A stretch of 64,000 nt of DNA from Diadema antillarum (taxonomy: Eukaryota): contig NW_027270918.1 of NCBI RefSeq assembly GCF_040938485.1, positions 2,418,001 through 2,482,000 of the forward strand, in the 5' to 3' direction. Shown piece after piece: positions 12,401 through 15,400 of this stretch (its first letter is position 1; each line of letters opens with the position of its first letter). A program made the translations under genes and the position numbers. The notes under the pieces are model-generated. The model ran no database searches. It was given only the letters and a program-made list of their open reading frames with translations, and was not told the DNA's origin.

Positions 12401-15400
12401 ATACACCCAAATGAGTGTGAAAAATTAATGCAAAGTTTTCTGCTTTTACACTACTGTAAGTGCCATTTCTTTTGTGAATTAGGACTTAAATCTAAAAGAT
12501 GAGTTTGTGAATGTAAACCACAGTGATGGAATTAGAAAGAATCATTTCCCTTTTCTAGAGAAGTTAGCGATTCCCCATCTTGAAGACAGTATGGACAATG
12601 CATTTTGCATTACAGGAGTCATCTCAAGCTGCTAATTATGCAAATATTGTCGACTCGCGAAATTTGCATTACATAAAGCATGGCCTAAATATGTACCACT
12701 TACATACAATAATTTCAGCACAAAAGCTTTGAATCTGCACTGCCCGGTCATCAATATTCACCTGTTGTACATAGTCTGCAAATTATTCAATATAAAGGAC
12801 TACATAAGAAGAGGATGGAAGAAGATGAAAAAGGAGAAGAAAAGGAGGAGGAAGAAGGAGAAAAAAAAAGAAGAGGAGAAATATATATATTTTTTTACCA
12901 TACATGTAACTGTATATTTGCAGATATAGTCTTAATGGAAATAATTTGATGGATGGATGCAGATAATAGAAATACAGTGTAGATCTACTGCATGATAACT
13001 CAGCTGTGTGGGTGGTTTACATTTCTGGAGCAAAATCTGAGATGATTTTAGAATGCATCGCTTGATAACCTAGCCACTTTTCTTGCGTGGAATGCCAGTT
13101 TGAGTGCATAATGCTCATCATAACTAGAGGCTACTCGCAAGGTGCTCCGTGTGGGGAAAGTCACTGCCCTGTGTAAACATTTGAAGTGGTGTGATGGGCA
13201 AGCTAATTCGGCATGCGATACACCAAAGTCCGCCCAAAGGCCGTTGTCTGTCTGATCGCACATTCGCTGCAGGGTTATGGCTCTGATGGGACTGTCTGTT
13301 CTATAAATAGAAGTCACAATTAACACGTTGGGAAACACCATGGGCCTGCAGCAAGAAAAGCTGGGCAGCTTTGCACCATGTGCAAAGCTAGTTCTTGGGA
13401 CATCTCTTGCTGCCCCCACCCCTCTCTGTCCAAGCCTATTGTACATTGTACCCCTCCCCCAGGCCCATTCCAAGTCTATATTGTAGCAGCGTGAATATGG
13501 AGAGATTTCTGGAAAATCAAAGGGAAATGTATATATGGCAATGTGCAATTATTAACCTAAATACATGTAGCAGAGTTCTGGGCATTTTACCTGTCACCTA
13601 GCTTGCTTTCCTTGAGGTATATGTGACCCGCTACAACAAAAGGATCCGAAAGTCGGGGGAGGTTGATTTTCTGAAAGTGACATGACTTATTTCCTTACTC
13701 TTCAGCTTTAATTTCATATATAGTGTGACTCATAAAAGTAGTCGGTTGAGGAAATATTGATGATTTTATAGAGCATGTCGAGTAGTCTAAGAAATCAGCG
13801 TTTTGAGAAAACTGCCTTCAAAGTTTTCCTTCCAACGCAATCGTGATCAAGGCGAGGTAAGACAATTTTCACCTTGTGACAGTAGAAGGTATGTTCCTAG
13901 CAACCTTTGCGATGTTCATTCAAGCTTGTGCCAGCGGTCTATGCACGACCAATCAGTAAACAGGATGCCACGCATTGACCAATAAGGTCACTCCCTTGTT
14001 GTTAAGGGCAGAGTCTATCTGCGGTGCTCAATCCAAATCTTCCGACACATTTTCTGTTCTGTTGAAATTTGGAAAATCATGGCCCTGAAAAGCACTAATT
14101 TCTTGCCTTTCCTTTGATCATTTGGCTTCGAAATTTCGGCAGATGATAGACGAAACATTACACTACAAAATCATGCCAAAATCAGAAATTTGATGGTTTT
14201 GACCAGTTTTGATGATCTGACTTCAAACTCGATTTTCTTGCCTCAGCCGTCAGCGACTTTCAGATCCTTTTGCCATAGCAGGTCACATGTTTCTATATGA
14301 TTGTATCAAAAGAGAATGAAATCTGTATATTAAAAGCCCATCGCGAACTACATGATCAGACCAGCCGCATGATACCGCGCACTATACGATCAGATTACAC
14401 AGCTAGGCTTACAACCGTTCTGGCTTCAGTGCAGCCATACCAAAGAGTATAGAAGCGCACGCATTGTGCACTTCGTGTGCTTGCATTTTACTGTATCTTG
14501 ATTGGCGGAAAGCCCACGACTGATTGTGAAAATTTGACGTGTCAAATCTCTACAACTGACATTAAGACAACTGACAACTGACATTAAGACAACTGACAAC
14601 TGACATTAGTAAAGAGAGAGTCAAGCGCCTCACAGCTGCTTGATTACCTCTCTCCAACTCTTTGCTATTCCTTGCTGGTAACTGCAGATTATTCTCATTC
14701 ATGTTATTATCAGAGTGCTTGGGAGTTATCACTGACACTACTGGACAAATTTTGAACTGCAATTCTGCTTCATTATCCTCATGATTGGTAAACTCTGTTT
14801 TTGGATTTATCTGATATTCTTGTGCTGCTCAAACTCCATTACATGGGCAAGACCCAGCTACAGCAGCATGATTCCTGAGCAGCAACACCTTATACAAAGG
14901 TCCTATTGTGATTGAGCAGAGCCTCTGGAGGGACAATGTCTTCTATTCTGGTGTGGCTTATTGTTGTCCTGACCATCCTCTGCAACTCTGGCCAGGCAGA
15001 CAAAGAAGTAAGCCTAATAACACCTGAGTCTACTAAGCAACTGGAATGGCATTTTAAATGTCCCATTGTCAAAGTGAAGTTCATAGGGAAGGCAGTACTT
15101 TACTACAGTAATGCAGACTCCACATTTAACATTGTACAGTGTGGTGATGTGCAGCAAAACCCAGGGCCTCTTCTACAGCATGGTACTTCCAATGCTAACC
15201 ATGATGCCACTGCAGCTTCATCCCGAACAACCCAGAATACAGCAAGGAAGAGAATTCAGTATGATAGGTCTGAACTCCTTGCCATCAACCATGTTCACCG
15301 ACGTGTCAGTCCTTCAGTGTGGTCGACTATCAATGAACTCGAGATATCTTCCAAACAGCCAACAAAGAGGGGAAGAAAAGGTGGCAAGAAGCGCTCAACT

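Follow-up and report, generated by a model that had tools for sequence, protein, structure and literature searches.

The N terminus of the protein encoded by a long interspersed nuclear element (LINE) in Diadema antillarum combines a signal-peptide-like leader, an unstructured spacer and a 2A-like, or StopGo, block. The element lies on the forward strand of the 64,000-nucleotide stretch analyzed here (contig NW_027270918.1, positions 2,418,001 to 2,482,000; hereafter the window), is intact and recently active, and encodes an apurinic-endonuclease-type (APE) endonuclease and a reverse transcriptase (RT) in one open reading frame (ORF). We consider it an even bet that the N-terminal module yields two products, a released leader peptide and a signal-less endonuclease-RT (EN-RT). 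We infer skipping from the precedent of sea-urchin LINE 2A sequences that have been assayed, and engagement of the endoplasmic reticulum (ER) from features of the leader sequence only. LINE proteins are usually regarded as cytosolic and nuclear, and for this reason a secretion-type signal at the start of the sole ORF of an active LINE clade is unexpected. If true, the pairing of leader and StopGo would be a compact, testable case of one ORF giving rise to two oppositely targeted products or, alternatively, of co-translational mRNA localization by a mobile element.

The N-terminal module and its conservation

The original prediction described an APE/RT LINE ORF that opens with a signal-type leader and carries the motif GDVQQNPGP at amino acids (aa) 70-78 (15143-15169), upstream of the APE domain; both the sequence and Pfam agree. 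The features of the element are as follows, in coordinates of the window.

14610..18434, forward strand: full-length single-ORF APE/RT LINE (non-long-terminal-repeat retrotransposon) of a young family, delimited by copy alignments and the 3' homology end
14610..14935, forward strand: 5' untranslated region (UTR) of 326 nucleotides (nt) with four short upstream ORFs (uORFs)
14936..18298, forward strand: main ORF of 1120 aa, stop codon included in the end coordinate (ATG at 14936, stop at 18296-18298)
14936..14998, forward strand: signal-peptide-like leader, aa 1-21 (hydropathy, predicted helix, same design in nine families)
14999..15076, forward strand: spacer, aa 22-47, poorly conserved and predicted to be unstructured (family alignment, AlphaFold)
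15077..15169, forward strand: conserved 2A-like block, aa 48-78, ending GDVQQNPG/P (nine-family alignment)
15143..15169, forward strand: GDVQQNPGP motif, aa 70-78, with the predicted skip between G77 (15164-15166) and P78 (15167-15169)
15170..15466, forward strand: linker from the 2A-like block to APE, aa 79-177 (family alignment, AlphaFold)
15467..16108, forward strand: APE-type endonuclease domain, aa 178-391 (Pfam PF03372 and PF14529)
16964..17698, forward strand: RT domain (RVT_1), aa 677-921 (Pfam PF00078, E = 1.9e-29)
18299..18434, forward strand: 3' UTR with a short (TA)n tail at its end (3' homology end)

By heuristic assessment the leader has the build of a Sec-type signal peptide, with a short n-region, a hydrophobic core of ~13-16 residues and a polar c-region that ends G-Q-A before D22. 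The c-region of this copy closes with C-N-S-G-Q-A, which places small residues at -3 and -1, and is followed directly by DKE. The leader is the sole strongly hydrophobic stretch of the protein, with a 10-residue Kyte-Doolittle mean of 3.14 at best, compared to at most 2.15 elsewhere in the 1120 aa. An AlphaFold model of aa 1-178, built with 76 relatives, contains a helix at aa 3-17 with a predicted local distance difference test (pLDDT) score of ~80, and no fold across aa 22-105.

A protein search with aa 1-175 returned at least 150 matches (557 candidates) in the D. antillarum genome, many of which belong to intact ORFs 1087-1182 aa long, with identities of 30-46%. Nine distinct families, which share only 24-39% identity in the N-terminal region, all possess the leader, the spacer and the motif; together with the motif's presence in 145 of the best 150 profile matches (below), this places the pattern far beyond chance. 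The plan is the same in 9 of 9: an initiating Met with a hydrophobic core (10-residue Kyte-Doolittle means of 2.3-3.7), a spacer of variable sequence, and a block that ends in G-D-(V/I)-x-x-N-P-G-P, within which Y56, F64, G70, D71 and N75-P78 are invariant. The original prediction had made conservation of the leader among copies a point on which it stood or fell, and the leader proved to be conserved both among copies and among diverged families.

A profile constructed from the nine N termini was scored against 1.84 billion representative proteins and produced 1200 matches at E <= 1e-3, 186 of them at E <= 1e-10. The named matches are all from echinoderms and span four classes (sea urchins, sea cucumber, brittle star and feather star), with most matches lacking a source name, so that carriers outside the echinoderms are possible; the species are Strongylocentrotus purpuratus, Lytechinus pictus, L. 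variegatus, D. antillarum, Apostichopus japonicus, Amphiura filiformis and Anneissia japonica. A sequencing run labeled "echinoderm metagenome" also holds part of the element. The layout, found in all four of the sampled classes, is either very old or horizontally spread. Counting ~100 database clusters together with the nine diverged families of the genome, the sequences indicate that the leader/spacer/2A module is shared across this clade of echinoderm single-ORF LINEs as a common design and is not a quirk of one copy.

A strong hydrophobic block occurs within the 45 aa ahead of the 2A block in 85 of the 127 matches with enough upstream sequence, compared to 11 of 514 downstream windows (Fisher p ~7e-61, a significance overstated because the sequences are related). 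The hydrophobic cores of relatives have a median of 11 residues (interquartile range [IQR] 9-13), with 1 of 76 reaching the anchor length of 19, and a small-residue -3/-1 site lies just past the core in 58 of 76. Given these short cores and -3/-1 sites, the leader is therefore signal-peptide-like rather than anchor-like. The position of the leader is also kept: the distance from the initiating Met to the Gly of the skip site has a median of 77 residues (IQR 74-81) despite an unconserved spacer, the center of the core lies a median of 66.5 residues from that Gly, and the end of the core falls ~56-61 residues from the catalytic center.

Comparison of copies within the family adds little on selection. 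The 78-codon module differs by 0-10 changes per pair of copies, which is too few for dN/dS. In the contigs of one related genome, the leader region has lost 3 nt in frame, and the two changes in the G70 and G77 codons are synonymous; we take this combination as a hint of coding constraint and not as a test.

Within the 2A-like motif, D71, V72 and N75-P78 are present and the position normally held by glutamate is Q73, which puts the sequence outside the strict motif D-(V/I)-E-x-N-P-G-P. The original prediction presented this glutamine as one base away from glutamate (CAG to GAG). D-V-Q-Q-N-P-G-P is found in 9 of the 9 copies in which the region survives, among them one at 76% and one at 83% identity, and the same position varies freely across the clade. 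Because Q is fixed in the family and the position is variable in its relatives, Q73 is not a recent slip from E, and the single-base view was abandoned. Among the nine families the position is occupied by E in 2, Q in 2, H in 3, D in 1 and K in 1. Of the best 150 profile matches, 145 contain G-D-(V/I)-x-x-N-P-G-P, and their third motif position is most often N (40), followed by H (28), E (23), S (20), Q (15) and D (12). Searches with the canonical D(V/I)ExNPGP would miss most natural members of this clade, in which E is present in only 23 of 145, and this bears on the sequence rules for StopGo.

Conservation extends over ~31-34 residues directly ahead of the skip site and stops upstream, which is the context expected of a 2A sequence. 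The ribosomal exit tunnel holds about the length of the conserved block, aa 48-78. Sea-urchin LINE 2A-like variants with substitutions at the glutamate position, namely STR-69_SP (E to Q), STR-61_SP (E to D) and STR-197_SP (E to N), skip in vitro, and reverting Q to E in STR-69_SP brings no gain in activity (Odon 2013, PMC3708506). The activity of the corresponding E14Q substitution in the 2A of FMDV (foot-and-mouth disease virus) is quoted as 56% or 26% (PMC12846837). By analogy with these cases, Q73 would lower membership in the strict 2A class and not the likelihood that the 2A-like sequence works, and we regard it as plausibly active, as the original prediction had supposed. The 2A half of the module, Q variant included, is already known biology.

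It is scarcely credible that the module is an inherited relic, its hydrophobic start without function, its 2A-like motif inactive and the 1120-aa protein made as one chain. Several non-E LINE 2A-like sequences are indeed inactive in rabbit reticulocyte lysate (Odon 2013, PMC3708506), but 142 sequences with ~19-40% identity overall show little or no variation at G70, D71 and N75-P78. A full-length chain bearing a signal, cleaved or not, would, moreover, deliver the endonuclease-RT to the ER, and this is hard to square with the many near-identical recent copies.

The closest known systems are the sea-urchin LINEs of Odon 2013 (PMC3708506), where 2A-like sequences lie 40-80 aa from the ORF2 N terminus of sea-urchin and other non-LTR elements, many of them single-ORF, and where, in STR-51/61/142/197_SP, a tract of 90-115 aa with no known role separates 2A from APE. 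Compared by description only, these elements share with the 14936 ORF its status as an echinoderm single-ORF APE/RT LINE with a 2A-like motif near the N terminus, the ~100-aa tract between 2A and APE, and a third motif position occupied by residues other than E (Q, D, N). That study searched with the canonical motif, E included, a pattern that would pass over most of the present clade, and the words "signal" and "hydrophobic" are absent from the paper. A 2013 commentary, 2025-2026 surveys of eukaryotic 2A-like peptides and full-text literature searches yielded no account of a LINE 2A preceded by a signal peptide, and a conserved leader of signal type that is distinct from the 2A and lies a fixed distance ahead of it appears to be undescribed.

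In viral 2A/StopGo sequences (FMDV F2A and relatives), as in the LINE, a C-terminal G-D-(V/I)-x-x-N-P-G-P requires ~20-30 residues of upstream context. The LINE differs in replacing the glutamate with Q here and with N, H, S or D in relatives, in its different conserved upstream block with an aromatic Y-Y and F, and in its setting in a retrotransposon instead of a viral polyprotein. The original prediction also invoked the role of some sea-urchin 2A sequences in protein targeting. The precedent exists in SpNLR2A (Roulston 2016, PMC4981915), another echinoderm protein with an N-terminal signal function and StopGo, whose skipped product is cytosolic and whose unskipped product is secretory; a like partition is predicted for the LINE. 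The parallel fails in one respect. In SpNLR2A, a host immune gene, one 26-aa peptide at the extreme N terminus is both signal and 2A, whereas the retrotransposon keeps its signal separate, ~55 residues upstream of the skip site, and would free a 77-aa signal-bearing peptide. The hydrophobic core at aa 4-16 thus stands apart from the 2A block at aa 48-78, and the dual signal/2A peptide of the SpNLR2A type is not what the LINE encodes. That the LINE module was the source of the sea-urchin immune-gene signal/2A peptides is speculation.

Downstream of the skip site, the linker contains a conserved helix pair at aa 111-119 and 126-134, modeled with confidence by AlphaFold (pLDDT 79-91), followed by a conserved basic patch, T-x-R-G-x-R-G-G (K/R-G), at ~aa 141-153. 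The nine families agree without exception on linker residues Y109, L114, W129, L135, I137, T143 and R145. For the helix pair and basic patch, one can only guess at RNA binding or at a nuclear-import signal. No Pfam domain was found in aa 1-177, and a search for look-alikes of aa 1-178 in the ESM Atlas gave no usable match.

Genomic copies and intactness of the element

The LINE is ~3.8 kb long and has near-identical copies (99.6-99.7%) elsewhere in the D. antillarum genome. Full-length copies in this 1.75-Gb genome begin to align at 14610-14621 with identities of 92.5-99.7%, and homology among copies stops at 18434, after the short (TA)n tail. Candidate copies numbered at least 1668 with a 3' probe (the 40 that were scored had 94-100% identity) and ~20 with a 5' probe; one copy is truncated 5 nt past the ATG. 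Many 3' ends against few 5' ends is the usual 5'-truncation pattern of LINEs. The copies are dispersed, mostly 5'-truncated and share their 3' end, as LINE copies do, and the presence by Pfam of the APE endonuclease and RT in one ORF places the element among the APE-type LINEs. The full reading frame is intact in at least three copies. The family is young, abundant and mostly 5'-truncated, and its many near-identical copies mark it as recently active.

The second in-frame Met of the main ORF is at aa 283. Since this residue sits inside the APE domain, no AUG other than Met1 can yield a complete endonuclease. The four uORFs of the 5' UTR are 27, 44, 11 and 15 codons long and all terminate ahead of the main ATG.

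Proposed mechanism and competing explanations

In the mechanism we propose, translation would initiate at Met1, the sole usable AUG. Once Gly77 occupies the P site and Pro78 the A site, the exit tunnel would be filled by the conserved block and the leader would be fully outside the ribosome, ~56-61 residues from the peptidyl-transferase center. StopGo would then free a 77-residue, signal-bearing leader peptide and translation would resume at Pro78. The exposed leader is expected to engage the signal recognition particle (SRP)/Sec61 route. The endonuclease-RT product beginning at Pro78 would have no signal, would carry the basic patch at ~aa 141-153 and would be cytosolic or nuclear, and any chain on which skipping failed would retain the signal and be sent to the ER instead.

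Several observations weigh against this mechanism. In a deep mutational scan of two viral 2A sequences, no substitution of E14 exceeded 0.6 activity except E14H in P2A (preprint 10.64898/2026.09.24.754024). About one third of clade members have H or S at the E position, residues that are weak or inactive there in other LINE contexts (Odon 2013, PMC3708506). On the side of the leader, the signal-peptide call was made with n/h/c-region heuristics and not SignalP, and the changes seen in the leader within the family (3 synonymous, 7 non-synonymous) are uninformative for dN/dS. The n-region of this copy (M-S-S) contains no basic residue; a basic n-region is found in 43 of 76 relatives. Such a residue is not obligatory for eukaryotic signals. 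The four uORFs precede the start codon, aa 22-77 are modeled without secondary structure (pLDDT 51-65), and none of the RNA-labeled sequencing runs holds the stretch. One run that may be RNA contains short APE/RT pieces only, which is not evidence of silence.

The tightly kept distance between leader and skip site, with the core center a median of 66.5 residues from the Gly, raises a different explanation that is possible but on the unlikely side. The StopGo pause would, in the manner of XBP1u (or Ty1 Gag), let the leader recruit SRP and bring the LINE mRNA to the ER/nuclear-envelope membrane; the released peptide would be a disposable by-product, and EN-RT synthesis would proceed on the cytosolic face, close to its own RNA. 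The XBP1u HR2 segment and C-terminal arrest peptide resemble the LINE in placing a hydrophobic segment of a type recognizable by SRP ~50-60 residues upstream of a pause that acts in the tunnel, and HR2 in stalled XBP1u is bound by SRP ~52 residues from the catalytic center (PMC6624018). The likeness is one of mechanism only, as the two have no sequence similarity, and XBP1u arrests without chain release in the service of mRNA splicing at the ER, whereas the 2A-like element of the LINE would release the chain. Ty1 RNA is reported to reach the ER co-translationally via SRP (PMC3945221). The unconserved and predictedly unstructured spacer and released peptide also fit a by-product better than a bioactive peptide. 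However, StopGo frees the nascent chain, so the SRP tether would be lost unless docking precedes release, and the kept length may simply reflect few indels since the common ancestor. The complete series of events, in which SRP takes the translating LINE mRNA to the membrane and release then yields a signal-less endonuclease-RT beside its own RNA, we would call unlikely. mRNA targeting nonetheless fits the geometry at least as well as the translational switch on retrotransposition hypothesized in the original prediction.

That switch belongs to a further explanation, which we consider distinctly unlikely: the 56-residue peptide left after signal cleavage would be a functional secreted product of the LINE, and the ratio of skipping to read-through would be a regulated switch on retrotransposition. 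The leader does look cleavable (G-x-A before D22), the peptide has 1-3 Cys in many families, often directly ahead of the G-D of the motif, and partial skipping is expected for non-E variants. The sequence of the peptide is, however, unconserved outside the 2A block, the disorder modeled for aa 22-77 and the lack of a Pfam domain in aa 1-177 give no sign of a folded product, and the conserved part is what the tunnel needs for StopGo, so no extracellular role is required. N59 was considered as an N-glycosylation sign of ER entry. It is retained in 134 of 142 sequences regardless of the residue at +2, and only 54% form a sequon; because N59 is kept whether or not S/T follows at +2, glycosylation is not indicated. 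The evidence weighs against a bioactive secreted peptide, though a short unstructured one is conceivable.

The module might instead act as a dose limiter only, lowering EN-RT output in the manner of a uORF or "reduction" element, with the leader serving that reduction, or disposal of the N-terminal product by quality control, and no productive ER targeting. Luke 2013 (PMC3894237) and Odon 2013 (PMC3708506) argued that 2A replaces ORF1 as the down-regulator of ORF2, and a 2026 preprint reports that most of the retrotransposon 2A-like peptides it assayed cut protein abundance rather than skip cleanly (59% of ORF2p cases; 10.64898/2026.06.17.732966). This account leaves unexplained a signal-type core of 9-13 residues with a -3/-1 site, held at a fixed distance in ~100 diverged clusters, and we judge it decidedly improbable.

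Flanking repeats and related loci

A short tandem repeat at 14540-14609, with units like caactgacattaaga and caactgacaactgacattaaga, adjoins the 5' end of the LINE, and no clear target-site duplication of the element was seen. On the other side, a very high-copy repeat with hairpin character begins directly after the (TA)n tail and occupies 18436-18600 and beyond. Its contig depth reaches ~1e5 in one sequencing run, with several "opposite strands" joints at 18508-18600, and it may be an element like a miniature inverted-repeat transposable element (MITE). An ORF of 124 codons (15111-15485, forward strand) runs in another frame across the beginning of the LINE ORF, and nothing indicates that it is more than chance.

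A host-gene origin of the leader was considered at two loci of the genome, C710 and C1302, which matched the 5' part of the LINE in three pieces ~1-2 kb apart, resembling exons. The gaps between the pieces proved to consist of nested transposons, with target-site duplications and terminal inverted repeats but no GT..AG borders. Both loci are duplicates of a single old LINE copy with an internal deletion, and the host-gene reading was rejected. The two regions (C710:554500-561800 and C1302:468600-473500) are near-identical, with flanks 98-99% alike, and each old copy is missing the portion corresponding to 15378-17656 of the window (APE and most of RT). Each also carries three nested insertions, among them one flanked by a 5-bp target duplication (CTTCA) and one of ~500 bp with terminal inverted repeats.

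Two of the database matches differ in layout from the LINE ORFs. Protein P0133, a 587-aa product of an ENA contig, matches the 2A block at five separate places, including GDVEENPGP at residue 158, and looks like a multi-2A polyprotein rather than a LINE. P0136 of Apostichopus japonicus (PIK33157.1, 563 aa) has its 2A-like motif at residue 308 and a hydrophobic stretch at ~residue 254, away from the N terminus, and may be a gene-model fusion or a host gene with an acquired module.

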